Shown piece after piece: positions 2,773 to 62,042 of a stretch of DNA of 64,000 nucleotides; within the stretch, counting starts at the first letter, position 1, and every line of letters starts with the position of its first letter. Location: NCBI GenBank assembly GCA_964106915.2, contig OZ066928.1; one strand, given 5' to 3'. This DNA is from Podarcis gaigeae (lineage: Eukaryota). The notes beneath the pieces were generated by a model. That model made no database searches, was not told the origin of the DNA, and saw nothing but the letters and a program-made list of their open reading frames with translations. The translations under genes and the position numbers were made by a program.

Positions 2773-3313
2773 GGCAGTCTTAAATTCAGTTATTCACATT
2801 CCAAATCAGTGCAAAACTCCCAGTATAAACAATTTTGCAAAGCAATTTCCCTTACATGATTCATTTTTCACTAAGCAAGCCTGGACAGTGTATATGGTCT
2901 TGATGGTCCAAAGGAACGGAAAGCAATATGTTTGGCACCAGCTTGGTGCAGGGGTTAGGTGCATTTTATGCACATTTCACCCTGGTATATGCAATTTTGA
3001 ACACTTTCCTTGGTTGGAGAACTGCATCGCAAATTTCAAAGGATGACTGTTTCAGTTTGCATTTTGTTTTGGAAAGTGCAAATTAGGTATGTTTCCCTTT
3101 AAATGCAAACTGCCTTGCCCAACTGGCTGGGGCTGATGGGAGCTAGGAATCCAAGAATATATTGGGGGCCACAGTTTCCCTAACCCAGTTTTAGGCTTTA
3201 GCGCTAAGTGATGAGGACTTTATCTCCGGGGTCTTCCCAATCTCAGCCCAACTACCTAACCACAGCTCCACACTGCCTCTCACTTTATTATGTGCAAACA
3301 GTATTAGTTTTAC

Positions 3314-3415
3314 CTCTATATTCATCCATAACGTAGAAGTCTTCTAAGTACAACAGCTTGCCAATCCAAGGGTCATAAGTATAGTAATACATAGCAAACC
3401 CTACAACGTCGGTAT
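3314..3415 (-). CDS. SATL1: SAT1-like exon 4 ([34 protein letters not shown])
   Basis: 102 nt with canonical AG/GT. Nearly identical to SAT1 [30 protein letters not shown]. Confidence 0.95.
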
Positions 3416-5803: not shown

Positions 5804-7438
5804 TGTGCCTCTTGGTCAAATGGCAGGAGGTTCAACAACATGTGCTGAAACTGATTTAAAATTGCATAAAGTATTTTGAGGGAAGTAGCAATCCGTTGTT
5901 GACAAGCAATTCCAAAACAAAGTAGAATATTCTCCACACTTTAAATGTCAAGGAGTGCAAGTTACATGTTTTAGGTCCTGGATAACAGGGGGGTTCTTGT
6001 GGGGAGATATTTATTATTGCCTTTCATGTGAGTCTGCGATTTACAAACATAAAAATGAAAAACAGTTTCGAAAAGAATAGGAAAAATCCAACTAAATACA
6101 GGCTTGCAAACAATACAAAGTGAACATTTAAAGCAGAAACCTTTCTCTTGAAATGTAGAAGCTTGTCAAAGCAATAATGTCTTTTATTTTCCCCAAAAGT
6201 AAAGTGGGTCCACGATTTACCCTCAATTTACCTGCGCAATCAGAACCTCTGGCACACAGCTGAAAAATAGTTGGAGAGCAGGGGAAACCCACCACAGAAA
6301 GAGCCCTCCATTTTGATTATCTGACTCTGGGAACTTCCCAGCATAAAACCCACATAAGTGGTGGGCTCACTATATCCCAATAGGGATGCTGTTCCACAGA
6401 ACAGGAGCACTGGCAATGAAAACCCTGCTCTGAGTTGTTGGGTTAAGTTAGCTATATTGAATTGTATTCTGTCGGTGGGTTCATGCTGTTGCCTTGTTGG
6501 GCTGTGTATGTGATAAAGGGGAGCCATGCTGAAGTGAAGGCATCCTCTTCTATTTCTCCCCATGTCAGTTTCAGTCTACTGGTTAGCTTTTCTAGTAAGG
6601 CTGTTTCCCATACTACTTGATACCAGTGTTCCATCTTTATTCCAGACAGGTCCCTCCAGTGTCTGGCTATGTTGTTTCTGGCTGCTGAGAGTAGGTGGGA
6701 TATGAGCTCTTTATAGGGTAAGTGGGCATTGTTATCTTGGAAGATATTCAGTAGGGCGTGACTTCTAGTACCTGTTTAGTTATTTTGCTTATTTCTTGTA
6801 TGACTGTTGTCCAGAAGAGTTGGGTTTGGGGGCATTCCCATCACATGTGGAGGTATGAGCCTGTGGAGGTGCAGCCTTGCCAGCATTTTGGTGAGGTTCC
6901 TGGGTGTATCAGTGCCAGTTTCTGTGGTGTTGGGTACCATCTGTAAGTGAGTTTCAGAGTGAGTTCTTCTTGCTGATATGGATTTAAAGGGAGGTTTAGA
7001 CCACATTCTAGTCAATTGGGTGGGGTTAATTTCACAGCCTATGTCGTTTTTTGATTATGTGAAGAGGGTTTGTGGGGCTTTGGAGCAGTGTTTTGTATAC
7101 TGTAGATACCATCCCCTTGCTATGTCCCATTGTTGTTAGGAGAAGACTTTTGAAGGTGGTCAAGAGCCTAGTGGCTGCTGGTTTTACTGCTGGGTTGTTT
7201 AAGGTGTGTAGTTGGTGGTGTGTTAGCCAGGATATTTATTTTGTATTTCTTGTGTCAATATGGGTTTGTTATTTTTGTAGAAGTCTGCTATGTGATATAG
7301 GCCTTTGGCTTGCCAGCTTTTTATCTGGAGATTTTGTCCTGCATGGTGGAATAGTAGGTGGTAAGCCAGGGGGATTAGTGGGCATGGGGTTGGGGACAGT
7401 TTGCCAACTTCTTCTTTCTGTGTAAACATGGTCTGTGT

Positions 7439-7574
7439 CAGGCTTCCTCAAACTCGGTCCTCCAGATGTTTTGAGACTACAATTCCCATCATCCCTGACC
7501 ACTGGTCCTGCTAGCTAGGGATCATGGAAGTTGTAGGCCAAAAACATCTGGAGGGTTGAGTTTGAGGAAGCCTG
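7439..7574. mobile_element. hAT-type MITE inserted in the L1
   Basis: TIR CAGGCTTCCTCAAACTC and an 8-bp TSD GTCTGTGT. Confidence 0.88.
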
Positions 7575-7647
7575 GTCTGTGTGAACCTGTTTAGTGTGGT
7601 GGGGATTTTCCTTAGTTTGTTTTGGAGGAATGTATATGCTGGGGTAG

Positions 7648-8010
7648 GGATGTGGGTGGCGCTGTGGGTAAAACCTCAGCACCTAGGGCTTGCCGATCGC
7701 ATGGTAGGCGGTTTGAATCCCCACAGTGGGGTGAGCTCCTGTCTTTCGGTCCCAGCTCCTGCTCACCTAGCAGTTTGAAAGCACTCCTAAGTGCAAGTAG
7801 ATAAATAGGTACCGCTTTATAGCGGGAAGGTAAACGGTGTTTCCGTGTGCTGCGCTGGTGCTGGCTCGCGAGAGCAGCTTCATCACGCTGGCCACGTGAC
7901 CCGGAAGTGTCTCCAGACAGCGCTGGCCCTCGGCCTCTTAAGTGAGATGGGCGCACAACCCTAGAGTCGGACACGACTGGCCCGTATGGGCAGGGGTACC
8001 TTTACCTTTA
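7648..8010 (+). mobile_element. Sauria SINE, full length, inserted in the L1
   Basis: Pol III A/B boxes, a BovB-like GAGTCGGACACGACT and an (ACCTTT)n tail. Confidence 0.9.
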
Positions 8011-9316
8011 TATAAAGGTAAAGGTACCCCTGCCCATACGGGCCAGTCATGGGAGTGTTTTCGATTATGTCTCTCTCCAAGTGTACCCATTGTTTCTTCT
8101 CATCTTCTAGAATGTATGGGATTATATGGTTGGCGATGTAGTATAGTTCTATGTTGGAGATTCCCCATGCTCCTTCTGAGGTGGGGAGGTGCAGGTGTTT
8201 GGGGCTTATTCTTGGCTTTTTGTGTGAGAAGATAAACAAGTGTTGTTTCTTCTGCCATTTGTGGAGTTGGGTTGGTGGAATCCAGATTGGAAGGGTTTGG
8301 AATAGGTAGGTTAATTTTGGAAGGGTAATCATTATGATCACGGCTATTATATCTGAGAGAGTGAAGTTAGTATTGCTCCATCTCATCAGGTCTTTGTTAA
8401 TTTGTCACCATAGGGGTTTGTAATTTGGTGGTACAGTTTTTTGTGTTTTCTGGTTATCTGTACCCCTAAGTATCTGAACTTGGTGCGGCAGACTTTTATC
8501 TTTGTGATGTTGGTGAACTCTTTTTGGATATGGAGGGAGTGTTGAAGTACATAGCCTCAGATTTTGCAAAGTTTAACCCGATACCATTGCAAATGTGCTG
8601 AGTTCTTTGGTTAAGGTGGTTGCTGTGTTGATGGGGTCTGGTGTTGTGACCATTAGGTCATCTGAAAGAGCCCTAATTTATAGGTTTTGTCTTTATTTCC
8701 ACTGCCTTGATGTCGGGCTGCCCAGATTCGGATTGCTAGAGGTTCCAGGGCCAAGATGAATAGGAAGGGGGGCAGTGGGCATCCTTGTTTCATGCACAAT
8801 GTACTACAATGTACACCCCTTATAGGTGGAGCAATGGATGCCAAAAATGACCTAAGTTAGTTTCTACAGACAAACACACTTTTTGATCCAGGCAGGCAGG
8901 CAAGAGGAACTCAATGCTACATTCCCTCAAGGAGGGGTACAGCTAGGGTGGGATTTGCTATGGTGAGAGTACCAAAGTTCAGATAGGGAGGCTTAGAAGG
9001 TTGCAGTTGAACTGGGAGCCTCAGCATTGCCAGTGATGAGGCTCTCCAAATGTCATTGGACCCCTCACCCACATCAAGCCCATTCAGCATATCCAGAAGT
9101 GATCAAGTTATAGTCCAGCAACTTCTGGAGGCCCACAGGTTCCCCACCCCAACCCACCTAGACCCTATTATCTTCAGAGGTCCTTCTCTGCATAACCCCA
9201 CCAGATGCAGTCCAGTGGGTAGCTTATTGAGGTGGAGCATTTTCAGTGTTGGCACTCATTCTATGGGATACCTAGTTATACAAATAAATGATAACTTTGT
9301 TTTCTTGAAAGCTTAC

Positions 9317-9397
9317 CCTGCATTGCATCATCCTTATTTGCTTCTGCTATTAAACACTGGAAGAAAGGACGTGATCCGAAACCATCTCGAAGCAAAT
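9317..9397 (-). CDS. SATL1: SAT1-like exon 3 (DLLRDGFGSRPFFQCLIAEANKDDAMQ)
   Basis: 81 nt, phase 1/1, donor G|GTAAGC. Matches SAT1 DLLEDGFGEHPFYHCLVAE. Confidence 0.92.
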
Positions 9398-9599
9398 CTG
9401 AAATGTTTAGATAGTTGAATAAAGCACTAAAATATAGTCCCAAGATAAAAGAAGATTCATAATAGTAGTACTAAGTAGTAGTACTTACTAGTACTAAGTA
9501 GTAGTAGTAGTAGGGTGGAGTGGAGTGCGAGGGAGGGAGGGAGGGAGGGAGGGTTAGGGTTTGTTGTTGGTTTGGCCTTGTTCTTGTTTTTATTATGTA

Positions 9600-18400: not shown

Positions 18401-19966
18401 CATTCACAGTAGTCTGTTTTGGGTGGGTAGCTGTATGTAAGCTTTACTCCCCATTCTACTAGAGAACTACAGAACCCTTACTCCTGCCCTAAATATTTAG
18501 CTTCTTTATCACCTTGCCCACCATTTTTTCTCTTTTGCCAATTATTTTTATTGATATTCCATAATTTTAAACAAATTGTCACGAAATTAATACAAATTCA
18601 ATATAAATTTAAAAGTTGTCTTTCTACCCACCCCATATGTCCCCTCTATTTTCCTTCCTCATTTGCTGCTCTCAATAATATAACTTTCCCAACTATCATT
18701 TCATTCATCCCTTCTCCCTACACATCACCTGTTCAGTTACCAATTTCTGTTATAGCTTTTATACATTGTTATAACATGTCTTCAAAATAGTCAAGTAGAA
18801 TAAATCCTCTTCTATCTATCTCTAATAGCCATTCATCAATTTTCAAACATTTCCTTCTGATACATCTTGAGTAACACTTTGCCTGGGGGGGGGGGAAACA
18901 GACCTTGCTTCCTCACTGACAACATACACATATTCCTCCTTAATCTGGCCTTGAACATTGCTATCGGACATGTGGCCCCAGTAATGAACAACTCAGCCTC
19001 TGGCCCCCGTAGTTAACAACTCAGCCTCACGGGTGCAGTATGCAGAGAGTGAAAACGAAACCTCTAGAAACTTTTTGGTTTATATAATAGACATTCTCCC
19101 CCTCTAACGCTGCCAGTCTCCCAGCGTCACCAACCCTTCACATTTCGCCATATTTCATCCTCAATTTGACACACAAGTTCATTAATAAAGAAACACAATC
19201 CATATCTCTTCTTTTTTGTCTGAAATTCTCAAAAGCCGTCAACACACTGTGGTCCATCCTGTCCCGTTCACTGTTCTTATTTCCAACTTCAAGCTTCAGA
19301 GAGGGAGGCTGGTGTAATATTCAACAAAATCCCTGTCTCCTCTCCATCCTCCCCCTCCCCAACTAATTAATTTTCCTGCAGTCCATCTTTCCAATCCTCA
19401 GTTCCATTAGTCCTTAGTTATAAAATAAATGCAATGCAAGGAGTATCTTTAAAGTCCACTCTTCCCAAAAACTTTGCATTCCATTGCTTTAGGGGAGGGT
19501 AGATAACGCAGATCCCCCCCCCAAAAAAACCCATTACTTACAACATTGACTTCCTTTCCCCTCCAGCATAAATCAGGACCTATTTAGCAGGTTGCCTCTT
19601 CACTTGCCAATTATGTCCTAATTCAAAGGTATTCCAGAGTTTACCATGGTAGCTTGCTGGGGCTGTCCTTGGACGCAGCAATTAAGCCCAGCGCCCTTAC
19701 CTTTTCATCTAGGAGATGGGGATTTCCATCCCCGCTCACACACAAAAAAAAGTATTAACGGACGACCGTGGATTGTGTCCTTTCGATACCCTCAAAATGT
19801 TAGGGGAGACATGCCCCTTACCCAGTGCTTTTTTTCTAAAAAATAATAATAATGTTTAGCGATACTCTCATTTTCCTACACATATTGAAATATTGCCCCT
19901 CAATGAGGTCAAACTTAGATTCACAAAATGTTTAGGGATATGCGTCCCCCCAGAAAAAAATCACTG
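18401..19966 (-). repeat. Left arm of the ~1.55 kb inverted repeat (partner 33422-35040)
   Basis: Near-continuous reverse-complement match to the right arm. The arm is a composite of an L1-like 3' tail, unique-looking DNA and a terminal CAGTG...CACTG MITE (19823-19966). The outer boundary is approximate. Confidence 0.92.
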
Positions 19967-20083: not shown

Positions 20084-20395
20084 TGGAATATAAAACTAAA
20101 ACTCCAGGACAATGTTCAATGTTCATATATTATTTTCACTCATACAATTTGATCTCCTGCTCAAAATAGAATAGTAACCAAGGATAGCTATTAAGTTATG
20201 TAGTGCTCCTTAAACCACCATTGATGTGTGGTATTATGGAATTGTATATATATATTTATAAATATTTTATTTCTTTTGTAATTTCTAAAAATAAAAAAAT
20301 GGATCCAAATAGGTTTACCTTAGAAAAGTTAATTAGTAATTGCTTACAAGAAGGCTGCTGTAAAACAAGTTCAAACTCCAGGACCTTTGGTCTGC

Positions 20396-20402
20396 TATAA
20401 GG
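20396..20402 (+). promoter_or_regulatory. Candidate TATA box of the EGF-TM gene
   Basis: CTATAAGG lies about 105 nt upstream of the ATG. Confidence 0.5.
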
Positions 20403-20503
20403 AGAAAGAACAAGAACAAGAAATCAAAAGTGAAGGAGAATCGCAGATGGGCAGGAGAGTCCCAGAGAAGAGGATTAACTCTTGTTCTAAACAGCATCCC
20501 ACC

Positions 20504-20579
20504 ATGCTAACCTCTGGTGCTCTCTTCCTTCTCCTGGCCGTGTTGTCCAAGAGTTGGCTGACGACGGAAGCTGCAGATC
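20504..20579 (+). CDS. EGF-TM protein exon 1, signal peptide (MLTSGALFLLLAVLSKSWLTTEAAD)
   Basis: Kozak-like ACCATG, a hydrophobic core, and a phase-1 donor C|GTAAGA. Confidence 0.8.
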
Positions 20580-20708
20580 GTAAGAAACATTTGGGGCTGG
20601 TTATAGATGAGACCTAGTTGAACAAGATCCTCCTAGGTGCAAAATGCAATCCTGACTGATCCCCCTCACTTAGCAACAGTTTCCAGAGTTTCCTGGGAAA
20701 AGCGATTA

Positions 20709-21229
20709 CCGTATTTTTTGCCCTATAGGATGCACTTTCCCCCCCTCCAAAAATGAAGGGGAAATGTGGGTGCATCCTATGGGGCAAATACAGGCTTTTG
20801 CTGAAGCCTGGAGAGCGAGAGGCTCTTGCTCTCCAGGCTTCAGGAAGCTCTGCGCAACTGTGTCGGCCTCCAGAGGGTCGTGCAGAGCTGCCTGCCCTGC
20901 CGGGCTCTGCGCAGATCTGTGCGACCCTTCGGAGCCCGGCGCCAAGCTGCGCCGGGCTCCGGAAGGTTGCGCAGAGCTGCCTGCATTAGGAATCCTCAGC
21001 GCGCCCGGGCTTCGCACAGCTGTCCGCAAGCCTGGGGAGACCGGCGCGGCTGCCTAGGCTTGCGGATAGCAGGCTCTTCTGAGGGCTGGGGTCGGGGGAA
21101 GCTCGGGCTTCCCCCGCGCCAGCCCCGTGCCTGGGGGGGGAAATAATTTTTTTTCTTTATTTCCCCCCTCCCCAAAAAAACCTAGGTGTGTCCTATAGGG
21201 CGGTGCGTCCTATGGGGCGTAAAATACAG
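20709..21229. mobile_element. pogo/Tc2-like non-autonomous DNA transposon with a GC-rich interior
   Basis: TA-flanked TIRs CCGTATTTTT.GCCCTATAGGA.GCAC. Retained CpGs suggest a young insertion. Confidence 0.8.
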
Positions 21230-21337
21230 TAGTTGTTAAACTGCTCTGGGAATTGTAACTTTGTAAATAGATAAGAGTCTTCCTCGGCACCAATAACCAA
21301 CTACAGTTCTCAGGGTTCTTTGGGGGAGGGCATGACT

Positions 21338-21616
21338 GGGAGCGAGTGTGGTGTAGTGGTTAAGAGTGGTGGACTTGTAATCTGGGGAACCGGGTTCGTG
21401 TCCCCGCTCCTCCACTTGCAGCTGCTGGGTGATCTTGGGCCAGCCACACTTCTCTGAAGTCTTTCAGCCTCACTCACCTCACAGAGTGTTTGATGTGGGG
21501 GAGGAAGGGAAAGGAGAATGTTAGTCGCTTTGAGACTCCTTTGGGTAGTGATAAAGCGGGATATCAAATCCAAACTCCTCTTCTTCTTCTTCTTCTTCTT
21601 CTTCTTCTTCTTCTTC
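21338..21616 (+). mobile_element. tRNA-derived SINE (Squam3-like) with a (CTT)n tail
   Basis: TGGTGTAGTGG A-box and GGTTCG B-box; an inverted copy lies at 29104-29345. Confidence 0.8.
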
Positions 21617-23359
21617 AAGTGGTATAACACTGCTTTAGAAAATGTGGTGCACATGGGGCCTGAACTTAAGGAGTCCAATATTAATCTGCATTAAGTTAGG
21701 TTATGATTTCAGGGCAGGGCTGGGGAACTGTGCAACCCTTCAAAGGATGCTGGACTGCATCTCCCAATATCCTAGACTATTGGCCATTCTGGCTGGACGT
21801 GATGAAAATCCAGCAACGTATGAAAGGGGGACAAGTTCTCCGCCCCTGGACTTGGGGTACATCCCATTGAGCACAATGGGACTTACTTCTGGAGAAATAT
21901 GGGTAGAATTGTGCCGTCAGGCAGGGGTAGGGATGACAGACGTAGATAAGGGTGTACTGGAAGATCTCTAGATGGTGTGCAAAAGATCAACCAGGGCTTC
22001 CTCTAGACATCTGTTTGGTCACTTGTGGGGAAAAGGATACTGGACTAGGTAAGTATTTGGCTTCATCCAGCTGGAATCATCTTATGTTCTTATGTTTTTC
22101 TGACTAGCAATAGCAACAGTTAGAAAGCTTCCTAAACCAGGTTGCTGAAAGAGAACATTCAAAGGAAAAGCAGGAGTTGGCTTTTATTTGAAAGGATCTC
22201 CCAGCCCTCCCTGGACATGCCAGCGGGAACTGGACCTGGGACTTTCTACATGTAAAGCAGAGGCTCTACCAGTGAGCCATGGCTCTTCCCCTAATAACCC
22301 TAGGAAGGGAGGTACTTTAAAGTTTTCCATTAGCATCTCGAGGACAGAAAGAACAGCACTCAGGTTACCTGATCATAGTCTTCTCTGCATTAGTCATAAG
22401 TTTACATCCATACATATAAAATAGCACACAGAGATGTCATGCAGTTCTGTGTCCTCTTTTATGATAATGTGTTAATGGTCACCCTATCAACAACAGTGGT
22501 CCCTGCCAGTAATTCCGGAGGTGGATGATGATGATAATTATTAACCAGATGCAAAGGAGGTCACAGGCTTCTGATCTGCTCTCAGGTGTTTACTGGTATA
22601 CGTTTTCTCATATGCTATAGATACATCTCTTTACCTTGGCCTGTTCTTAACCCCACCCCCTATTCTTCTGATTGTAATTTGTTTTAACTGGTTTAAAATC
22701 TTTTTGTGTGGTTGTACCTCACCCTCACACCTTATGGTGTAGGTCAGGCAAATAGTAATAGTAGTAGTAGTAATAATAATAATAATAATAAACAAAAACA
22801 GAACAACAGAAGTAATTTTAGGAGGTACACCTTTGTGTATCTTTGCATCAGAGTAGTGCAAATGCACTGGCAGGAGTGTTGGATCAGCTCTGCAGGCAAG
22901 TTTTCACTGTACCAGCCTCCCTGTTGTCTCGTCCCTCCCAGCAAGCAGCAGAGACCTACCTTTCCAGAGTGATGTGGTTGCATATGGCAGCAGACCACCC
23001 TAGGTGGTTTTACTGGGATTAGTCCGGTTAAAATGAATGGATATGACTACCTGAAAGTTAGGTTATTTTAATTTCAGCAGGTCTGCTCTGAATAAAAGTT
23101 AAATACCACCCATAGTTTCTCAGTTTAGATGAAATAGGTATTGTTAATTAGAGGCTCTCTGGTTTAATTGTGGCTCGTATGAAGCAGGGAGCAAAGGTGC
23201 TTCGTGCATCGGGGCAGGTGTGTTTGTTTATATCAAATAATAATAATACGTAATAATGATAAATAATAAAGCAGGATGAAATGTTGGTGGTCCTATATAA
23301 ATCCACCACTAATGCACTGTTCTTGCACCGGTGGCATGTTGAATACCCGTTTCTGCTTC

Positions 23360-24200
23360 TTTGGCAATCACTTGTAGCCAAGTAAGATTGTCTTTCATGA
23401 ACACGGTCTTAACAGTGAGTCTGTAAGTGACTGTGGAGGCCAATTCTGGATCCACACATTCTTCCACAGTGGGGACCTAGGTTTCTGGTCAGGAGTTGAT
23501 CACAGTGTGGATTTGCCAAGTGTGCCTTCCTCTTGGCACATTTTCTCCTTTGCGTCCTGAGTTCATGCTTCTTCAAAGTCTATGACACCTTTGGTGAAGG
23601 CTGTTCTCCATTGGAGCACTCGCAGAGTTCCCAGTTATCTTTTGTTGTCCACTGGTATTTTGCTTTCCATTCTTAAGTTGGGAATATAGTAGTTGCTTTG
23701 GAAGATGATAATCAGGCACCAGAACAACATGACCAGTCTAACAAAGTTGATGTTGAAGAATCATTGCTTTGACACTGGTAATCTTTGCTTCATCCAGTAC
23801 ACTGGCATTAGTTCATCTGTCTTCCCAAGTGATCTGTAAAAAATTTCAGATGGAATCTTTCAAGGAGCTGGAGATGGCATTTATAAAAGGTTCATGTTTC
23901 ACAAGTGTACAGTAAAGTTGGTAGCACAATGGCTTGTTACTAGCATTTTGGTTTCCCTCTGAATGTCCTAGTCCTCAAACACTCTGCACTTCTATCAGGA
24001 GAAAGCTGTGCTTCTCGGAGCTCAGGCGATGCTGGATTTTGGCATCAATGTTGGCTTTTGTGGAAAGATAACTGCCTAGGTAGGAAAAGTGGTCAACTTT
24101 TTCCAACGTTACACCATTAAGTTGGAATCGTGGTGTTGCAGAGGGGTTGTTTTGTGCTTGTTGGTGCAGCACTTTGGGATTTTTTTGGATATTGAGCGAT
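23360..24200 (-). mobile_element. RTE-clade LINE 3' fragment
   Basis: Peptide NGVTLEKVDHFSYLGSYLS..NIDAKIQHRLS, frameshifted. Confidence 0.78.
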
Positions 24201-24369
24201 AGGCCAAGTGGCATGTTGAATAGCCCTGCAAAACAACTCAGGTCTGCAAGGCCCCTGAGACAAAGCAGCACTTCATTAGAATATGCTCACAAATTATCTC
24301 TATGGGTATCTTAAATTATGGTCAATATGACATTGCTATGCAGCTCAACTCTCTCCCCACTGTTTTCAG

Positions 24370-24475
24370 CCAATTGTTCCGGTGTGGCTGACCTTGATGA
24401 TTGTCCAGGCAGTACAAGCGATTTCTGCCCAGAAGGAGTTGCCTGTGGTTGTAAAGATCAATTTCCCTTTTGCAA
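24370..24475 (+). CDS. EGF-TM protein exon 2 (PNCSGVADLDDCPGSTSDFCPEGVACGCKDQFPFCK)
   Basis: Acceptor ctgttttcag, donor AA|GTAAGT, six Cys in an EGF-like spacing. Confidence 0.88.
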
Positions 24476-25387
24476 GTAAGTTACTTTCCTTCCTTTTAGG
24501 GTTTGGTTGAGCTTTGTGGGGAAAGACAATGGTTGGGCACCTGACCTCCCTCTGTCCACCTCACTGCTGTATATTATGACAGGGGTGTCAGGGAGAGAGA
24601 GGCTTGTAGCAAGGATGACATGGAATAGATGTGCAGCAGCTGAATTAGCTTTATTCCATTGCCTCTCCATCCTGTTATGCAGCATCAGTGCAGCCAGAAG
24701 GAGGTCAGATGAGTGGTGCAGCCCCACTGCACCAACTGCCATGTCTACACAGGCACCATGTGCTTAAGCCATGGGTAGGGAACTTTTTCAACCCAAGCCA
24801 CATTCCCCCAGAGGCAACTTTCAGGGGGTCGCATGCCAGTGGAGAAAGAAGCCAGATTCCACAGTCAGTGGGGCCATGGATATGACTTACCTTTCTTCAG
24901 TAGGCAACACCCCAGCTGTGTAAATGTCAGAGGCTGCGACATTCCCCACATTTCCACTACTCTCTATCCAAGCATGCAAAAGGCACTGTCCTAGGCTCCA
25001 ACCAGGCATAAGAAGCCAAGAAGGGTGTGGTCTGTCCCAACTTCTGCCAACCTAGCAGTTTGAAAGCACACCAGTGCAAATAGATAAATAGGTACCACTG
25101 TGGCAGGAAGGTAAAGAGCGTTTCCTTGGACTCTGGCACTCATCACGGTCCTTCATGTGCCAGTAGCGCTTTAGTCATACTGGCCCCATGGCCCCTGCAA
25201 GCAGTCCGTGGACAAACAAGTTCCATTGTGAGGAAAACAGCAAGGTTAAAAATTGCAGCCCTGCCCAATTTGACCGCACGTCACTGGATAGCACCCCAGC
25301 ACAAAAGCATTGCGATGGGTTGTAATCATACTATTAGGGGGTTGACGCAAACTGTTTTGATGTTGCTTTGCTTGATTCCATCCACAG

Positions 25388-25579
25388 GTGCCCTTCCTAT
25401 CAAAATGGCTGGAAAAATTACTGGTACATGGGTGTCAAATGCGAGGAGCTTTGGAGCACTTTGGACTTGATTTTAGTTGTGGTTTTCCCTGCAGTGGCTC
25501 TGTCTTTTGCAGCTGCTGTCACAACACAGTGGGTCCGGTATTGCAAGGACAAGCCAGAGAAAGAAGCCAAGCGAAACCG
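25388..25579 (+). CDS. EGF-TM protein exon 3: end of the EGF module plus TM helix (CPSYQNGWKNYWYMGVKCEELWSTLDLILVVVFPAVALSFAAAVTTQWVRYCKDKPEKEAKRNR)
   Basis: Acceptor tccacag, donor CG|GTGAGT. Contains the Y-x-G-x-x-C-E EGF terminus, a hydrophobic stretch and a basic stop-transfer segment. Confidence 0.9.
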
Positions 25580-25731
25580 GTGAGTCAGTATGTATTGCAG
25601 CCTTGTAGGCTGCAAATCTATGCACACTTACCTAGTTTGATCCCAAGTAAGAATCAAGGAGAAATTAGGTGCTGTTTGTATTTTAATGGAGAGCAATGGA
25701 CTTCACACTTCTTGAACTGAAATATGAATTT

Positions 25732-25940
25732 CTCTCGCTTGGACTACTGCAATGCGCTCTATGTGGGGCTACCTTTGAAGGTGACCCGGAAACTACAACT
25801 AATCCAGAATGCGGCAGCTAGACTGGTGACTGGGGGCGGCCGCTGAGACCACATAACACCAGTCTTGAAAGACCTACATTGGCTCCCAGTATGTTTCCGA
25901 GCACAATTCAAAGTGTTGGTGCTGACCTTTAAAGCCCTAT
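25732..25940 (+). mobile_element. L2-clade LINE ORF2 fragment
   Basis: [32 protein letters not shown]...LKDLHWLPV. Confidence 0.85.
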
Positions 25941-26379
25941 GGCAATCGTAATAGGTGTTGAAATTTTGGGAGGTTGGATAGTTACAAGGGAATGGTCTCA
26001 GGTGTGGGGTGCACATTTTATTTATTCTTATTACTTTGTTTTTTTAAAAAGGAGGAAGTGTAAGTGGTGGTACGTCACCTGCCCCACTGTTTCCACTGGT
26101 GCCAGAATGCCCTCCTCTCACCTGTGCACAGCTGCTGTACAAAGAAGACAAGTGACAATGCTTAGACGAACACCCCACTGAGAAAGGAGTGGGTATTCTG
26201 GCAGTGGTAGAAGTGGGGGCAGGGCACAGCACATTCCCATTTTGCCTCAGGTGGTGAAACGGGGCAGGCTGTTCCTGTTCTCACCCCTCCTCGCCAGCAG
26301 TGTACTAAATTTCTATATGTATGTGGAAGGAAGGAAGGAATCGAGGGCTCACATTCTTTTGACTCTTATATATTTTCAG

Positions 26380-26482
26380 TACTCAGGCAAGGCAGCTGAG
26401 ACCTGAACCACAGCATCATTCAGAATATGCTCCTAAACTGGCCAATAGGTTGAGATCCGCCTCTTATTCACAAGGAAGACAG
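26380..26482 (+). CDS. EGF-TM protein exon 4, cytoplasmic (TQARQLRPEPQHHSEYAPKLANRLRSASYSQGRQ)
   Basis: Acceptor tattttcag, donor CAG|GTAAAA, phase 2->0 fits. Confidence 0.75.
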
Positions 26483-28196
26483 GTAAAATATTTTGTTTGT
26501 TTATTTGTTTGTTTGTTTGTTTGTTTGCTTGTTTGCTTGCTTGCTTGCTTATTATGGACTTGGAATTTAATTGTGGTAAAAGGGGTGCTTTTTTTAATCC
26601 AGTGGATGGCATTGTTTATTTTTGAAATGCCCCGGGGTTTTGCATTATTTTTTGTATATGAGGGAAATAGCTGGCAGCCTTTTCTGAAAGGCGTTCTTCC
26701 CGTATCCACTCTGCAATTGACATTTACAATGGATGTCTGATATGTAAGATGAGATTAGGGCATTTGCATTAGCTGACATCAAATGGACTTCGTTTGCTTA
26801 GAAGCTGCAATATGATTGTCCTCCTTTATCCCAACCAGGCCTAGAAGACTCCTGGTGGGGTCAGAGGAGGAATCTGCAGCAACAAATAGCTGCTGCAGTG
26901 CCAAGAGTCCAGTTCAAGTTTTGTTACTCTTTGCAGTCAATGGCCATTACAACATAAGCATAAAACACATATATGGGGGGAGGATTATTCATCGCATAAA
27001 ACAGATAAACCCCAATAATACAAATAAATAGCATTTAAAGCATGGATTTCATTCAAAACTTCCCTTAACATTTAGCACTGATCTGAAAGGTGCCTCTAAC
27101 GGGATAAAGCTATCCTGCAGCTAATTAACTTGTTTACATCAGGCAGCAGACATCTTATTTAGAAAATGTCTCGTTTGCCTTCTAAGAAGGTCTAAAAGGC
27201 TAGAAGAAATGTCACACCTGGTAGGTATTGTAAAGGACAAAAGAATAAAGTGCAGCAAAAAAAAAAAATCTTATTAGAAAATCTGCCAGCCAAATATGCT
27301 ATAGGGGTAGTTTGGGAGCTAAGCTGGAAGTGTGCCTGACAAGGAAATAAGTTCAGTTCTGCAGATAGGTGGCCCTTCTATGGTTTGGTATCATACAGTT
27401 TTTTTTAGAACCACAACCACAACAACAACACCTTGTGCTCAATGCAGGAAATCCTTAGCTAGAGCATCACTGACCAATGGTTGTACAGCCCCTGCTTGAA
27501 TACCTCCAGTAAGGGACACTGGTAACTGGTCCCACAGTCAAACAGCTCTTACCACTTCTATTTCTTCTGTGGGAGAGAAAGCCACTGATTCTTTCATTCA
27601 TTCCTATACAGTAAGGATGGAGAACCTATAGTCCATCAGATGCTGTGCTACAACTAATATTATCTTTGACCGTCACCTGGCTGGGGCCAAAAGGAGTTAG
27701 GAGCTGCAGGTTCTCCACTCCCGATATACAGCTAAGGAACAGAAACTTTAATCATTTATGTGTAGAATGATGGCAGTATTTTCTGAGTTTTTGAAATAAG
27801 AAATATAGGGAGGACAAGGTACAATAACCAGGTTTGTTTTTAACTCTATCATGATGTGTTTGCAACTGGTCTTTATTTCACTCTGATTTTCTCTTCCTGT
27901 ATACCAACCTTCATCAACTTGGTGCCCTTCAGATATTTTTTAGGCTATATTGTAACTCCCATCTGCCTCAGTCAGCATGGGTCCCATATCTTGACGGCAT
28001 ACGGTTGATGAAGGCTGGTGAGTAATAGTAGACATATTATCTTATTATTTGTCTTCAGTATTTTGGGGATTGCATATTTGTTTTTAAGGGTTGCATCTTT
28101 ATCATCTATTTTTTCATAATAAACATTTTAAAATAACAAAACAGAAGTCAATTTGTCGCTTAATTCCCCCTTCTTTTTTTCTCTTTCTTGGTATAG

Positions 28197-28276
28197 GATA
28201 ATATTAAATTTCCCAAGTACAATCTCCAAAGTTACCCTCATGAACAAATACAGACACCATATGCTGGAGACTACAG
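28197..28276 (+). CDS. EGF-TM protein exon 5 (DNIKFPKYNLQSYPHEQIQTPYAGDYS)
   Basis: Long polypyrimidine tract then TAG, donor AG|GTATGA, phase 0->2. Confidence 0.78.
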
Positions 28277-29103
28277 GTATGATGTCCTTTGGTCAAACTT
28301 TTTCACAATGATGATATATTTTTCCTGCTAGAAGATAAATTGTGCACACTGCTCGGCAATGATGGAAATCATTATATATTTTCAAATGTAAAATGATCTT
28401 GAACTGTTCTGAAATTTGCCCTCCATTTACTTGAAAGCTTTCTTCTCCTGAGGAAGAAGAGTCCATTGTTCTGCATCATTTTCAAGGCATTTTAGAATTT
28501 GTATGGACCTGGAGTTTAGAACATGCCTTATAGTTGTCACGTAGTCTCATATTTTCTGTTTGTTTTTCTTACCAATAAACATTTATCCAGTTGCCTGCAA
28601 CCTTCCCAGCTGTTCAGGCCATATAACCTCCTCCCAGGCCACACCTCTCACTGGCCTTGTTTTGTACCTTCCTTAAGTGTTTTTGCCTGGACAGAGGATA
28701 TAGGTGTGTGTGTATATAGAAACTAGCTTACTGCACAAAGGCAAAATTTATATGCATCAATTTTTGCCTCCACTACCATGAGGCTCATGGAAGTTTGCCC
28801 AGAAGGCATTGTGGGCCTTGAGATTAAAAGGTTTCCCACTCCTGCTATAGGAGCTGCTTGCCTATCTCATCTCTATGTACAGAAAACCTGCAAAAGACAG
28901 AGTCCTCGGCTGCATGTTCATTCTATGTTCAGACCTTTGTATGAATGAGTGTAGGTCAGAAGCTGTGGTGGTGCCTGTGATCTGCAGGAGCTCATATGAC
29001 GCAACTAGGAAAAGGGATGAAGAAGGAAACAAGCAAACTGAGACAGAAGTTCATTCGCAGTTTTCTATAATGACCAGTTTGTAATGAAGGATCCGCTTAA
29101 GGG

Positions 29104-29345
29104 AGAAGAAGAGTTTGGATTTGATATCCCGCTTTATCACTACCCGAAGGAGTCTCAAAGCGGCTAACATTCTCCTTTCCCTTCCTCCCCCACAACAAAC
29201 ACTCTGTGAGGTGGGTGGGGCTGAGAGACTTCAAAGAAGTGCTATTAACCCAAGGTCACCCAGCAGCAGCTGCATGTGGAGGAGCGGAGACATGAACCCG
29301 CTTCACAGCTTACGATTCTGCCGCTTCTTACAACTACTATACCCC
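29104..29345 (-). mobile_element. Squam3-like SINE
   Basis: Reverse complement of 21338-21616. Confidence 0.8.
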
Positions 29346-29893
29346 ACTTACTCTTAGGAGAGGAAAAGCTAGATGGAGCTGGTGTCTCAGCTGAGCCAAC
29401 GGACTGGGCCCTGCTTCCCATCTTTCTTTTTGCTGCAGCCAGGTGGGATGCTTTGGGCTAAACTGATGCCAAAACTAAGATCCCAAAACTGAGGCCATTC
29501 ATTTTGATTCAGTGCATACAATAAGCGGTTATCATGTTGTTATGCCTAGATCTGTATTCCAGAGAAGTAGCCATGTTATTCTGTTGCAGCAAACGTAACA
29601 GAGGTGAAATCTACAAACATATTTAAAAAAACGCTGTGAAAATGCTTTTTAAAAAAATGTTTTGAAAAATACATTGAATTTGGCATAGCTCACTGCCTCA
29701 CATTTGTATATTGCACTTTACACATTTAAAATGTTTTATTTGCAGCTGTGTAGCTGAGTCCAGAGACTTGCAGCACCTTAATGGTTTACTGTGCCATATT
29801 TATCTTGAAACATAACTCTTTGTTGCATTTATCTGCCCATAAGAAATTTATATTTGCATTTTTTAAAAAAAGTGTTTAATTTGATTATTATAG

Positions 29894-30059
29894 TCAGATG
29901 CCTCACCAGCCATTGAGAAGAGCTGTTCCAAGCCAAGATGATGTATTTGTGGGTCGGTCTTTCCAAGCTGGCCAGCTTAACTCTTGGGAGAGTGAGGTGC
30001 CTGATGTGGATTATGAGGACATAAACCCATTTTCTGCTATGCCCATGCAACGATTTCCA
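29894..30059 (+). CDS. EGF-TM protein exon 6 (QMPHQPLRRAVPSQDD...EVPDVDYEDINPFSAMPMQRFP)
   Basis: Acceptor attatag, donor CCA|GTATGT, phase 2->0, open frame. Confidence 0.75.
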
Positions 30060-31495
30060 GTATGTACAAATAATCTCAGTTATACAAGGAGTGGGGGTTT
30101 TTGTTTTGTTTTTACTGGGGCAGGATTCAGAGAGAGCTCTCTGCATGAGTGGAAGGACCTCTTTCTTCAGTTTCCAGTGGGAACCTGCTACACTAGCCTT
30201 CCCTGACATGGTGCTGCCAGATGTTTTAGACTGCAACTACCACCAACCCCAGTCAGCATGGCCAATGGTTTGAGAGGATGGCAGCTGCAGCCCAAAGCAT
30301 CTGAAAAGCACCTGGTTGGGCGAGGATGCCCTACACCAGATGCCACATCATTCCCAGTCCTCAGGGGTTACTTTTCAGGGCTGCAGTAGGGAAAAGGAAC
30401 AATCCCCATCTGTAAACAGAACTCTGTTCACAATTCCCTAGATCCTACTGATAAAATTTGCACTAGGAAACTGGAAATGGAGCACATGTGAAGCCTTTGT
30501 GTATCAGGTTTACTACATAGGTGTTCAGGAAGCCTTAGGGCTTATTCAGACTTCCTTCTTTGCCATGCTTTCAGGCACAGACCCACAGTTTCCAGGTCTA
30601 TGTCCGAGCTGTGGTTTTTTTTTTGTCCCACCACTTACCCCAGAAAAGCCTGCTATTAACTGCTAAATCAGAACAAACAGCAATTGAGGTTTCTGTGGAT
30701 TGCTGTTTGTTCCGATTCAGCAGTAAAGGGTTTTTTTTTTCCATTAGGAAGCAGTGGGACAAAACAAAAGACCAGAAAATGAAACATAAAAGAAAAAACA
30801 ACTCACTGCTTAGACCTGGATTTGGAAAGAGCCCTTCGACGTAACTATGAGAGCCTGTCTGTTACATCACCCATTTCCTCTTCCTGATTCTTAGGCTGTG
30901 TGCACAACCATACATTTAAAGTGCATCCTTACCCCAACCCCACAAAGAAACCTGAGAGCTGCCATTTATTACCCAGAATTCCTACAGTTCCCAGAATTCC
31001 TGAGGGTGTGTGCGCGCCTTAAATGTATAGTGTGGATGCAGCCCCAGGGCTTAATCTTCTTCCCCACCTACCCACTCCCTTTCTTCTGTCTTATGCTGAC
31101 CAACCCCACTGCGACTCTCTGCTTCTCCATGGCTCTTTAAGAAAGTGTATCCACAGGAGTAGAAGCTGGTGGGAAAAGGGAAAAAATAATGGAACTCATG
31201 AACATGCCCAGAAGCAATTTTGGCCCTGTAGCAGGAGGAGGAGTCTGTCTAGAGCAGTCATGTGGTGTTTCTCTCCACCTGCTGCAAATTACAGTTGGTG
31301 GTAGGTGGCCCTGTGGGAAGTAGGGAAGAGAAAACAGTCTTGCTGGAACTGTAGCAAGGGCCTGGTGTTATCCTTGCCTGCTTCCCTCACAGTCCTGGAA
31401 TCCCACATGGCAGGTGGGAAGGAGGCTCTAGGAGAGGGGGCAGGGAGTCCTTCCAATGCAGCAACCAATTTTCATATTTTAACTTTCCCTTACAG

Positions 31496-31624
31496 AGACC
31501 CGGGGCATCAGTGGTACCTCGGCCTGAGCACCAGAAGTATGGTCATCAACCAGTGAATTACCTGAATGGTCAAAGAGCTGGAAGGCCCTATGGGCTCGGG
31601 CACCAGCAGGATAGATACACCTAG
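31496..31624 (+). CDS. EGF-TM protein exon 7, terminal (RPGASVVPRPEHQKYGHQPVNYLNGQRAGRPYGLGHQQDRYT*)
   Basis: Strong acceptor ttttaactttcccttacag, TAG stop, AATAAA at 31633 and 31848. Confidence 0.78.
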   Translation, partial: RPGASVVPRPEHQKYGHQPVNYLNGQRAGRPYGLGHQQDRYT

Positions 31625-33421: not shown

Positions 33422-35040
33422 CAGTGAGTTTATTTGGTGGTGGTGCAGAGGGACGCATACCCCTATACATTTTGTGAATCTAAGTTTGGCCTCATTGAGG
33501 GGCAGTATTTCAATATGAGTTGGAAAATGAGAGTATCCCTAAACATTTTTTTAAAGAAAGAAAGCACTGGGTAAGGGGCATGTCTCCCCTAACATTTTAG
33601 GGTATCAAAAGGTCACAATCCACAGTCGTCCATTAATGCTTTTTTTTGTGTGTGAGCAGGGATGGAAATCCCTGTCTCCTAGATGAAAAGGTAAGGGCGC
33701 TGGGCTTAATTGCTGCGTCCAAGGACAGCCCCAGCAAGCTACCATGGTAAACTCTGGAATACCTTTGAATTAGGACATAATTGGCAAGTGAAGAGGGAAC
33801 CTGCTAAAAAGATCCTGATTTATGCTGGAGTAAAAAATCATCAGTTTGGAAAGGCTTGAAAAGAATGAAAGATGCTAATTTCTGCTTTGCTTGAATGGTG
33901 TAAGGAGGGGAAAGGAAGTCAATGTTGTAGGTAAAGGGTTTTTTTGGGGGGGGGATCTGCGTTATCTACCCTCCCCTAAAGCAATGGAATGCAAAGTTTT
34001 GGGGATGAGTGGACTTTAAAGATACCTCCTTGCATTGCATTTATTTCATAACTAAGGACTAATGGAACTGAGGATTGGCAGGATGGACTGCAGGAAAATT
34101 AATTAGTTGGGGAGGGTGGAGAGGAGACAGGGATTTTGTTGAGATTACACCACCTCCCTCTCTGAAGCTTGAAGCTGGAAATAAGAACAGTGAACGGGAC
34201 AGGATGGACCACAGTGTGTTGACGGCTTTTGAGAATTTCAGACAAAAAAGAAGAGATATGGATTGTGTTTCTTTATTAATGAACTTGTTGCGTGTCAAAT
34301 TGAGGATGAAATATGGCGAAATGTGAAGGGTTGGTGACGCTGGGAGACTGGCAGCGTTAGAGGGGGAGAATGTCTATTATATAAACCAAAAAGTTTCTAG
34401 AGGTTTCGTTTTCACTCTCTGCATACTGCACCCGTGAGGCTGAGTTGTTCATTACTGGGGCCAGATGTCCGATAGCAATGTTCAAGGCCAGATTAAGGAG
34501 GAATATGTGTATGTCGTCAGTGAGGAAGCAAGGTCTGTTCCCCCCCCCCCAGGCAAAATGTTACTCAAGATGTATCAGAAGGAAATGTTTGAAAATTGAT
34601 GAATGGCTATTACAGATAGATAGAAGAGGATTTATTCTACTTGACTATTTTGAAGACATGTTATAACAATGTATAAAAGCTATAACAGAAATTGGTAACT
34701 GAACATGTGATGTGTAGGGAGAAGGGATGAATGAAATGATAGTTTGAAAAGTTATGTTATTGAAAGCAGCAAATGACGGAAGAAAATAGAGGGGACATAT
34801 GGGGTGGGTAGAAAGACAAGTTTTAAATTTATATTGAATTTGTATTAATTTCGTGACAATCTGTTAAAAATTATGGAATATCAATAAAAATAATTGGCAA
34901 AAGAGAAAAAATGGTGGGCAAGGTGATAAAGAAGCTAAATATTTAGGGCAGGAGGATTCTGTAGTTCCCTAGTAGAATAGTAGAATGGGGACTAAAGCTT
35001 ACCTACAGCCACCCACCCGAAATAGAATGTAACTGAAATG
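33422..35040 (+). repeat. Right arm of the ~1.55 kb inverted repeat (partner 18401-19966)
   Basis: Reverse complement of the left arm with substitutions and indels, including about 70 extra bp near 33830-33903. The outer boundary is approximate. Confidence 0.92.
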
Positions 35041-46116: not shown

Positions 46117-46701
<585 letters not shown>

Positions 46702-47469
46702 TGACATTTGAGTCTGTTCAGACTAGAAGTGATCCAGTGATGAGAGGTTATGAAGTATAATTGGTTGTTAGTTTGAATATAATTTTCCCAATAAAATTTT
46801 GGAAGAAATAGCATTACAACCGTAAAATACTCAATACTGTTTAAAAATGGTTTCTAGTTAGTAGCGGTAGGTGGCTAGTGTACATAAATCTTTATCCAGT
46901 TGTACCCCTCTGCTTAAAGAATACTGTTGGATTGAGAAGAGGCTCCCATGAGCCAAAATGGAAATTTCTGCAAATTCCCCTTTCTCCTGCAATTATTCAC
47001 ACTTCCTACTTCACTTCCAAAGGGCTCACCAGCTCTCTTGAGCAGATTTTGGAGGAGTTGCAGAGGAAAGAGAATTTGAGAAAATAAATTCTACCTTCTC
47101 TTTCTGCTAACAGAAACCTCTTAGATCAAAGAGCCTTCTATCAGCAGAAGAACACGATAGGATAGAATACAGCTCACAGTGAGATTTTGTTTTCACAGTT
47201 AAAGAGGTTTATGGGAACAGTACAACATTCTAATATATATATATTCTTGGAACCATGGCTGGGAGGACTTGACAATTCTTATGAAAGACTCTTCAAAAAC
47301 AAAACAAAAAACTTCCATAGCAGTGCACATACAACACTTCAATTCTTTGCATTCTTTAGAACACATTTCCAAATGGAGTACTTCAATGTTAAATAAGTAG
47401 ACATTTTTAAAGGTTAATTTGAAAACAACAACAAAAAACTAATTTTATAATGGGCAGTTATGGGAATTA

Positions 47470-47720
47470 GTAGATCCCGAACGCCTTGGATCCCGAACGC
47501 CTTGCAAGTCTAACATTTTGGCTCCCAAATGCCGCAAACCTGGAAGTGAGTGTTCCAGTTTGCGAACATTCTTTGGAACCTGAACGTCTGACGGGGCTTC
47601 CATGGCTTCTGATTGGCTACAGGAGCTTCCTGCAGCTAATCGGAAGCCATGCTTTGGTTTGTGAACGTTTTGGAAGTCGAACGGACTTCCGGAACAGATT
47701 CCGTTCGACTTCCAAGGTAC
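47470..47720. mobile_element. Tigger-like MITE, partial
   Basis: CpG-containing repeat ending CCAAGGTAC, resembling the Tigger-like TIR. Confidence 0.55.
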
Positions 47721-49256
47721 ATGAATTGAAGATCGGATAGTAAGAACAACAGACTTGTGGCATCTTTAAAGACTTACAAAATTACCATGACATGAGCTTC
47801 TGTGGATTATGACCCACTTCATCAGATGCATGCAGGGTTTTCTGAGCTAGAAAGATGTTTGTTTGTGTTGCCGTTAAGGTGCCACCAAGACTCCTTTGTT
47901 GATTTTCTGAGGGAAACTAACATGGTATGACAACTGTTACAAGGAAGACATCAGTCTGTGTAAGCTAAAAAAAAAAAACCCCCACACAAATAATGAAATA
48001 TCTCTTTATTTTTGTTTTTGATGTTTGTGATGTTCAAACACCCACAGTGGATTGCTAGCTCTTGATCCATATGATAGCCCTGCATGCACAGTACTGGTAA
48101 TCCTATGCTACCCATTGCAGCTGTTCTTTAGGGGTAACATAATATTCCACTACCAGCTTCCTTCAAAAATCTGTTATTTTATTTAAAGCAATTTCTAAAC
48201 AACTTAAAATTGAAAGTCTCTAAGTGGTATACAAAAATGCAGACATGAAAACAGTAAAAACGAAAAGTATCATAAAAACAACAACAAAACCTAGTAATAA
48301 CAGGGTCCAATCTTATTCTTATTGCTTACTACAGTATAGTAGGTTGACAACGTTTTCGTGGTGTCACGCCACTTCCCTTAGCAAGGATTCCACCACCAGT
48401 AATGTCATCACGGCAGTCTGGATTGGTGGTGGAGTTTCTTACAAGCAATGTTTAGATTCACATTGTGGGTCATGCTGTAGACCACATGTTCAGAAATTAT
48501 TATTTGAGCCATAATATGGGTGGCTAAGCCACATCATTGTATGCTGGCCAAAAGTTACCTAGTCCTGCAATATGGTGCTGCATAGTTTGCTAAAATTAAG
48601 AATACATTCCTCTATTGAGATAGAACCTAGGTAAAGCAAATTTAAACTTACTGAATAAAAGCACAACTGTGAAACTACGTCTCATGGACTTCTGTGCTTG
48701 GTGTGACATCACCAGCATAGTCTATGCTGAGACATCATATGAATTGAGAGCTGGCAATCTACAGTGAATCTGAACATCTCACATCTGGAAACAGCTGAAA
48801 AGGGAAGTTAGAGGCGGCAAATATTACCCTTTTTCTTCTTTGGTAAACAGGCTTTTCTGCAGAATTTCTCTTGCAAACAATCCCTTCACACTTATTTGTG
48901 CTGAGAGCAACAATATAATATAACTGGAATTTACAGAATTTATTCAGTTTCTTCCACTAATGGGTTTACTATGTGGACCAGACCAGAAAGTAATAGTCCT
49001 GCAGCTATTACTTTAAAATGAAAATTTTGGTGAGGAGAGTTGTGAGATTATTAATGCATGAAACTGAAATTTCTTCATTTAGTTCATATCTATATGATGA
49101 TGTCTGTGCAAATCTTGTTACACCTAGGTATATTTTGTTGAGAAAGAAGCATGGGTTGAAGGAGGAATCCAAAGTGTGCATATTGAATGGAATTGACATA
49201 AGTAATTAACTTAGATGTCAAGCTATGGTTGATCGATACAGTACATTTGTCTGAAG

Positions 49257-49260
<4 letters not shown>

Positions 49261-49297
<37 letters not shown>
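49261..49297. repeat. (AC)n microsatellite
   Basis: Read directly from the sequence. Confidence 0.95.
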
Positions 49298-49302
<5 letters not shown>

Positions 49303-49810
49303 GTAGCATCCCTTAAAATACCTTGCAAGAGTTGAAAAATGTGAGCACATTTGCGACATTTTTATTTAACCCCTTGTTTCCAATATTTTAAGCACCTAAC
49401 ATGTCTCTGTAACAAGGGCTTTAAAAAATGGAAAAACAACAACAGTGTGATAAATTAATGTTTTGTAACCACTTGTAAGGTCTACCCGAAAAGCAATATA
49501 TAAACACCTTAAATAAATAAAAATAACACAGAACGTTGATAACTACTTCAGAAACAGTATGTTATTTCCTGACTTCCTGTGATTCCAGCTGAAAAGCTTT
49601 CTTTTCAAGCAGCTGTTTTCAGTAGAGTTTAACAATGTAATATCTACTTAGAAGTAATCCTGTCTGAGTTCAGTCAGGCTTACCAGCACTTACTTTCCGG
49701 TAAGTGTGTGTAGGACTGTATCCTAAATGTCTCCTCTGTTTGCATCCGACTAAATCCATGTCACTGTTCCACATTTTTAAGGCAGCATGTTTGGGAAAGA
49801 AATGTTAGTA

Positions 49811-60800: not shown

Positions 60801-62042
<1,242 letters not shown>

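Follow-up and report, generated by a model that had tools for sequence, protein, structure and literature searches.

A lacertid orthologue of mouse 2010106E10Rik between SATL1 and ZNF711 encodes a small membrane protein with an eight-cysteine EGF-like module

The epidermal growth factor (EGF) module of ErbB ligands holds six cysteines, with about 8 residues in its last loop. For the genes of these ligands, Stein and Staros gave two criteria, a splice site that parts the fourth EGF cysteine from the fifth and an EGF module adjoining the transmembrane segment, under which the meprins and MUC3, MUC4, MUC12 and MUC17 are also candidates; in verified ErbB ligands an arginine before the last cysteine is near-invariant (PMC1618406). 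In EGF this residue is Arg41, which stands before the sixth cysteine and contacts Asp355 of the receptor. Integrin beta3 I-EGF4, in turn, has cysteines spaced 6,7,5,1,2,1,9 and bonded 1-5, 2-4, 3-6 and 7-8 (PMC3601072). Here we examine a gene at positions 20504-31624 of a 64,000-nucleotide stretch of DNA from the lizard Podarcis gaigeae (GCA_964106915.2, contig OZ066928.1; the whole stretch is hereafter called the window). An earlier note, made from the letters alone, had described a gene that lies between SATL1 and ZNF711, has no characterised function and encodes a small type I membrane protein carrying a single EGF-like module, and this description stands. The gene is already annotated in databases and hence is no discovery; it is unstudied, and it is older and more widespread than the earlier note supposed.

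The seven exons of the first model were checked on the window sequence and join, at the coordinates given for them, into one intact frame (Table 1). The coding sequence is 852 nucleotides long (283 codons plus TAG), and its six introns, of phases 1,2,2,0,2,0, are all GT-AG, each with a pyrimidine tract. The ATG at 20504 stands in the context CCACC-ATG. A start matching it is used by most orthologues, placing the first cysteine at residue 27-28, and the in-frame ATG at 20447 is probably a minor start. The translation carries everything that had been read from it, namely a signal-peptide-like N terminus, an NCS sequon, eight cysteines, a hydrophobic helix and a tail of ~170 residues. The cysteines are spaced 8,7,5,1,6,1,16; the earlier gaps are as first listed, and the last was corrected from 17 residues to 16.

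Similarity searches were performed with the window exons one by one, while orthologues from the databases were used for full-length searches and folds. With exon 3 alone as the query, 39 protein matches were returned (best E 1e-23), and each window exon matched the protein of Lacerta agilis LOC117040471 collinearly, at 68-100%. A conserved open reading frame could be found in both related lizards, Podarcis muralis and L. agilis, and in the RefSeq model of P. muralis LOC114589572 exons 2-7 have the same lengths as in the window (106, 192, 103, 80, 166 and 129 nucleotides). Exon 2 is 106 nucleotides long in lizards, chicken and mouse, and the window gene does not differ in intron phase from its counterparts in P. 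muralis, L. agilis, chicken and mouse. The window gene is the lacertid orthologue of mouse 2010106E10Rik (GeneID 67715, NP_001162062), and the same gene is found as RGD1561958 in rat, LOC422270 in chicken, zgc:158432 in fish and LOC114589572 in P. muralis. With the mouse, rat, chicken and fish orthologues it shares the eight-cysteine spacing (which recurs in nearly all tetrapod members), the seven exons and their phases, the position after APOOL/SATL1 and a promoter core; it differs in its diverged tail sequence, in the optional 19-residue N-terminal extension of lacertids and in the inverted duplication that brackets the gene in Podarcis-type genomes.

Annotated orthologues were found in sharks (named zgc:158432), bichir, gar, bowfin, otophysan (carp-like) and clupeid (herring-like) fish, lungfish, amphibians, squamates, turtles and birds and, among mammals, in echidna, bats, rodents, rabbit, horse, hippo, sloth and tenrec. 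In a tree of 37 members the groups follow the vertebrate classes, with 7 changes, which is the minimum. The flanking genes are where the earlier note had put them, with ZNF711 at 46153-62042 on the plus strand and SATL1, of which an exon lies near 3300-3400, on the minus strand; a SATL1-type acetyltransferase lies upstream of the gene in lacertids, and an ApoO-family gene in chicken. Because orthologues extend from sharks to placentals, mouse included, and because the phases are identical, the neighbours agree and the tree is species-like, the suggestion that the gene is lineage-restricted or lost from mammals was wrong. The named matches included no haplorhine primate, carnivore, ruminant, marsupial or spiny-rayed fish, but the searches were word-limited, some matches were unnamed and the human sequence was not looked up, so that absence is not shown. 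Loss of the gene may be limited to some lineages; two papers on human gene loss do not mention it in their main text. If humans are without it, this would be a mouse-human difference of relevance to intestinal models.

Transcripts and substitution rates bear on the alternative that the seven-exon splice model arose by chance or is non-functional. In a squamate, mouse and chicken, the open reading frame is present in spliced contigs from sequencing runs; in the squamate contig (SRR6291288, assigned to squamates by protein similarity), junctions 1-2, 2-3, 5-6 and 6-7 fall at the window exon boundaries. The synonymous substitution rate (dS) is 0.08 to P. muralis and 0.12 to L. agilis, and in the comparison with P. 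muralis the ratio of nonsynonymous to synonymous rates (dN/dS), from small counts, has an overall value of 0.36, with 0.13 in exons 2-3 and 0.54 in the tail. This purifying selection, the same exon structure in two further lacertids, chicken and mouse, the spliced contigs and the detection of the chicken protein leave a chance model virtually no probability for the window, and for the family as a whole they refute it. By its sequence, the window model is a genuine gene, far beyond chance.

The eight cysteines are invariant in 67 ectodomains, and fold predictions make an EGF fold the likely structure. An AlphaFold model of the L. agilis ectodomain is confident, with a predicted local distance difference test score of 86.6. 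EGF domains, for the most part those of ErbB ligands, came first in three fold searches, at low scores. Foldseek was headed by NRG1-beta, betacellulin, EGF and Spitz, all weak matches (E 0.6-2.5), and VIA by epiregulin (Z 4.2), NRG1 (Z 3.9) and the EGF module of factor XII (Z 3.7), likewise weak, with all Z ≤ 4.3; in VIA, TGF-alpha was 38% identical over 45 aligned residues. The Atlas feature neighbours were NRG4, epigen, betacellulin and tomoregulin (0.82-0.85, leads only), and the shape neighbours were meprin (TM-score 0.50), IMPG (0.52), CSPG5 (0.47), NRG4 and NRG2, within a range of 0.45-0.52. Sequence searches of Pfam, PHROGs and PDB gave nothing significant, with no Pfam EGF match at threshold; Pfam is without a model for this family. 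A profile search for distant paralogues recovered family members only (no mucin at E ≤ 1). Matches to TMEM154 were discarded as generic transmembrane matches below the cut-off. A knottin, such as agouti-related protein or a spider toxin, was likewise rejected, as that likeness is one of cysteine spacing and the fold searches rank EGF domains.

In the structural register, Cys2, 3, 4, 6, 7 and 8 take the places of the EGF six, with Cys2 and Cys8 on EGF Cys1 and Cys6. Four disulfides, 1-5, 2-4, 3-6 and 7-8, are probably formed in the modelled fold; the 1-5 pair was assigned by elimination and not from coordinates, since the register uses the other six cysteines as the EGF set. Integrin I-EGF modules also have eight cysteines, and the spacing agrees at x7, x5, x1 and x1. 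In contrast to them, the window module is present in a single copy, and no integrin was found among the fold matches; Pfam EGF_integrin gave one weak match (E 0.55, 1 of 67). The likeness may be convergent. Identity with an integrin beta subunit was rejected, as the ectodomain has only ~60 residues and no Pfam domains, where tandem I-EGF, PSI, hybrid and I-like domains would be expected.

Only 8 strongly conserved residues lead from the last cysteine to the hydrophobic helix. The hydrophobic window begins 9-10 residues past this cysteine, and in the AlphaFold model a predicted strand runs into a helix starting 6 residues past it, with no flexible stalk. The motifs W-Y-x-G-x-x-C, W-x-T-x-D and L-P-[GA]-x-x-L are invariant near the membrane, as are W+4 and P+16 (the transmembrane proline) in 57 diverse sequences. 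With the EGF module directly on the membrane helix, the protein most likely works tethered. The tail is poorly conserved save for N-x-A-[YF], P-x-x-D-Y and a terminal R-x-Q-like motif, and most orthologues hold a motif of the NPxY/F type. The asparagine of N-x-A-[YF] that is changed in the window gene is retained in P. muralis and L. agilis.

Both features named by Stein and Staros were found in this family. The exon 2/3 junction falls within C-K/-C (slash at the junction) in lizards, chicken and mouse, and the EGF module is membrane-proximal. ErbB ligands such as TGF-alpha, epiregulin, epigen, betacellulin, NRG1 and NRG4 share with it the single juxtamembrane EGF module, the Cys4/Cys5 intron, the order of signal peptide, EGF module, transmembrane helix and tail, and the Y-x-G-x-x-C ending, and their folds are the nearest in PDB. 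The window family differs from them in its two extra cysteines, in having Lys, Asp or Asn for Arg, in the absence of a predicted flexible stalk, in a last loop (C-loop) of 16 residues, or 12 in teleosts, against their 8, in its long Pro/Tyr tail and in the lack of any significant sequence match. Before the last cysteine, 57 diverse sequences have K in 39, D in 8, N in 5, R in 2 and G in 2; the window has Lys, and teleosts have Asp or Asn.

The likeness could mean that the protein belongs to the ErbB-ligand lineage as a divergent, membrane-bound form, modulating EGFR, ErbB2 or ErbB4 in cis or in juxtacrine fashion, as the EGF module of MUC4 or the tomoregulins are reported to do. Such a role would suit the intron and membrane position of the module, a layout like that of TGF-alpha or epigen, and the lead of ErbB ligands in the Foldseek, VIA and Atlas feature rows; the loss of Arg need not speak against it, as tomoregulins are without it and yet reported active on ErbB4. 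The scores are all weak, however, with Foldseek E at or above 0.6 and a Z of about 4 that ties with the factor XII EGF module, and the sequence match to TGF-alpha (E 1.4-3.7) is tied with agouti-related protein and spider knottins. The missing Arg (Asp/Asn in teleosts), a C-loop 4-8 residues longer and the extra cysteine pair count against it as well, and the evidence points to an apical site, unlike that of enterocyte EGFR, which is mainly basolateral. We consider an ErbB modulator of this kind unlikely, though worth keeping in view; if true, it would be a new regulator in the gut epithelium. A fuller version, in which a so far overlooked member of the ErbB-ligand lineage, spread across the jawed vertebrates and bearing an extra disulfide of integrin type, serves as an abundant, non-shed gut ErbB modulator, present in mice and perhaps lost in humans, is also doubtful.

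The same ErbB-ligand-type gene structure and overall layout would fit a classical precursor from which a soluble growth factor of the EGF family is shed. Since only the 8 conserved residues lie between cysteine and helix, with the predicted strand running into the helix, and the receptor-contact Arg is absent, this is the explanation to which we give very little credence. Of the earlier suggestion of either a ligand precursor or a mini-receptor, the shed ligand precursor is thus unlikely, lacking both Arg and stalk, and a mini-receptor or a tethered accessory protein is still live.

Meprin alpha and beta, MUC3/4/12/17, IMPG2, neuroglycan C and the tomoregulins have in common with the window family the intron rule and the membrane-proximal EGF position. 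In this class the Arg is variable or absent, and several members are brush-border proteins. The window family is set apart from them by an EGF module that makes up the whole ectodomain, by the extra cysteine pair and by the absence of astacin, MAM, MATH, SEA, PTS or follistatin domains. Identity with meprin A beta was rejected, as astacin, MAM and MATH are absent in all members, including those that NCBI names 'meprin A subunit beta-like'; so was identity with a transmembrane mucin (MUC3/12/13/17), as both the PTS repeat region and the SEA domain are absent. The W-Y-x-G loop and the tail motifs may also resemble those of MUC13 and MUC17. None of the papers searched was found to place this protein, as an eight-cysteine, stalk-less variant, among the juxtamembrane EGF modules.

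In mouse small intestine, 2010106E10Rik is expressed at 162 fragments per kilobase per million mapped fragments, and its 3' untranslated region is edited by APOBEC1 (PMC4197816). The gene is also listed alongside Fgf15 and Defa (defensin) genes in a caecum contrast (PMC9871501). In chicken, the LOC422270 protein ranks 8-9 among host proteins of a caecal-microbiota fraction, together with MUC13, ANPEP, MEP1A, SI and SLC15A1, whereas caecal tissue gave no detection of it (PMC5042506). From the chicken lumen proteomics and the mouse expression we infer that the protein belongs to the brush border of the small intestine and passes into the lumen. The papers searched contain no study of the gene itself, only entries in five expression or proteomics tables, and neither papers on zgc:158432 nor papers on stalk length were found in that literature.

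The proximal promoter core holds three sites that we take, from knowledge of consensus sequences, to be of HNF1, HNF4/DR1 and TATA type. Aligned to the region upstream of the chicken gene, which had no part in choosing the core, it scored 75 against a control maximum of 34. For mouse the score was 52 (control maximum 34), the core having been chosen after the mouse sequence was seen, and an unbiased test with 400 nucleotides gave 15/983. Mouse transcript-like contigs have their 5' ends 24-44 nucleotides past the TATA-like site. In chicken, the HNF1-like and HNF4-like sites are retained and the TATA-like site is less clear.

The reading we lean towards, giving it slightly less than an even chance, is that of a tethered brush-border accessory protein that binds a membrane partner in cis and is not a shed EGFR agonist. 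Two points favour it: conservation is highest at the membrane boundary, and the contact to ErbB has been lost. Enterocyte expression would be driven by the promoter of HNF1/HNF4/TATA type, whose conservation was observed and whose factors are putative. The product would be an apical brush-border protein that crosses the membrane once, as the chicken lumen proteomics and mouse expression suggest, with a presumed four-disulfide EGF module, set directly on the membrane helix, as its sole extracellular part. Acting while tethered and presumably without shedding, it would use its invariant membrane-proximal surface to bind a transporter, hydrolase or receptor in cis as an accessory subunit, and its fast-evolving, Pro/Tyr-rich tail may dock sorting or signalling adaptors through the NPxY-like N-x-A-[YF] and Tyr motifs. 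The gut lumen would be reached on shed microvillar membrane. An analogous case is collectrin (CLTRN/TMEM27), a small apical type I accessory subunit that resembles the membrane-proximal end of a larger brush-border enzyme; the analogy with the window protein is functional only, with no sequence or fold relation found or tested.

Several points weigh against an accessory subunit. The cis partner is hypothetical and the apical location indirect, conservation of the transmembrane helix shows no helical-face periodicity (p=0.32), and low-level expression outside the gut is reported, in kidney progenitors and in chicken muscle. The fold and feature neighbours, mostly ErbB ligands, would also fit an ErbB partner, and the data on the chicken fraction could reflect direct binding to bacteria.

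Such binding is part of a further alternative, a lumen-facing mini-receptor or defence protein in which a glycosylated module locked by disulfides would bind bacteria or some luminal ligand and the Tyr-rich tail would signal or drive uptake, and which would also travel on microbe-coating brush-border vesicles. The protein is in the top 10 of the microbiota-associated fraction in chicken, where its rank climbs from 60 (D1/R1 group) to 8-9 (older-donor groups), but this fraction also holds ordinary brush-border and digestive proteins (SI, ANPEP, SLC15A1, CPA1), so that co-purification explains the rank. A design that would resist proteases, the NPxY/F-like motif of most orthologues and the meprin and SEA-EGF proteins among the Atlas structure neighbours are all in keeping with such a role. 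Against it, purifying selection acts on the ectodomain (dN/dS 0.13-0.36), which does not evolve fast as many microbe-binding surfaces do, and a module of 60 residues would sit below the glycocalyx. We regard a mini-receptor of this sort as improbable. Whichever role applies, the gene is of interest as an ancient one (sharks to mammals) that is well expressed in mouse intestine and whose protein is found in the chicken gut lumen, and its placement in the juxtamembrane-EGF class, to which the ErbB ligands also belong, with a module whose eight cysteines are unusual, allows its function to be tested directly in mouse or zebrafish.

Table 1. Positions of the gene, its promoter and the flanking inverted duplication in the window
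Feature	Position	Strand	Remarks
Left arm of inverted duplication bracketing the gene	18407-19950		Not part of the gene
Proximal promoter core, 85 nucleotides	20321-20405	+	Conserved upstream of chicken and mouse genes
HNF1-like site GTTAATTAG	20328	+	Consensus
HNF4/DR1-like site AGTTCAAA	20368	+	Consensus
TATA-like site TATAAG	20396	+	Consensus
Upstream in-frame ATG and 19-codon extension	20447-20503	+	Start used in lacertid RefSeq models
Exon 1, coding part	20504-20579	+	Signal peptide, residues 1-25; phase 1
Exon 2	24370-24475	+	NCS sequon (24372-24380), Cys1-Cys6; ends between EGF-equivalent Cys4 and Cys5; phase 2
Exon 3, ectodomain part	25388-25579	+	Cys7 (25389), 16-residue loop, Cys8 (25440), invariant W-x-T-x-D juxtamembrane
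Exon 3, membrane part	25388-25579	+	Predicted transmembrane helix, residues ~88-110 (~25467-25535), invariant Pro, then Cys and basic stop-transfer
Exon 4	26380-26482	+	Tail; position of the family N-x-A-[YF] motif, degenerate in the window (H replaces N)
Exon 5	28197-28276	+	Tail; fastest-evolving exon among lacertids
Exon 6	29894-30059	+	Pro/Tyr-rich tail with P-x-x-D-Y motif
Exon 7, coding part	31496-31624	+	To TAG
Candidate polyA signals	31633, 31807, 31848	+	
Right arm of inverted duplication	33450-35026		~93% identical to left arm

Elsewhere in the family, APOOL (MIC27) and exons of the orthologue are joined into one gene model in pig, naked mole-rat and mouse lemur; these are probably read-through or annotation fusions. 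The herring orthologue sits between TAF1-like and IGBP1-like genes (assigned by Pfam), and not between APOOL and ZNF711; we take the counterparts of these neighbours, TAF1 and IGBP1, to map to mammalian Xq13 and to belong to the same ancestral linkage group. Family members carry misleading automatic names, among them 'meprin A subunit beta-like', 'protein SSXT-like', 'translation initiation factor IF-2' and 'proline-rich protein 2'.

Both arms of the inverted duplication around the gene are also present in P. muralis, where the matching duplication lies at 7198-9490 and 22612-24493 of the locus sequence (L002); in L. agilis most of the arm is found in the downstream copy only. At informative sites the arms group by species in 27 cases and by position in 3, which points to gene conversion between them. 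The arms thus recombine, and the gene could become an inversion polymorphism. The chromosome is probably the lacertid Z, to judge from the ~50-Mb orthologous chromosomes. The idea that the inverted repeats had moved or flipped the gene was rejected, since the window, P. muralis and L. agilis agree in its orientation relative to SATL1. An element of ~150 nucleotides lies at the inner ends of the arms (33422-33573 and 19819-19950) and occurs, inverted, upstream of the L. agilis gene as well (L001, 9335-9485). A second inverted pair, intronic, at 21345-21584 and 29104-29348 (~245 nucleotides, 85% identical), is also present in P. muralis and probably consists of two copies of a short interspersed repeat.

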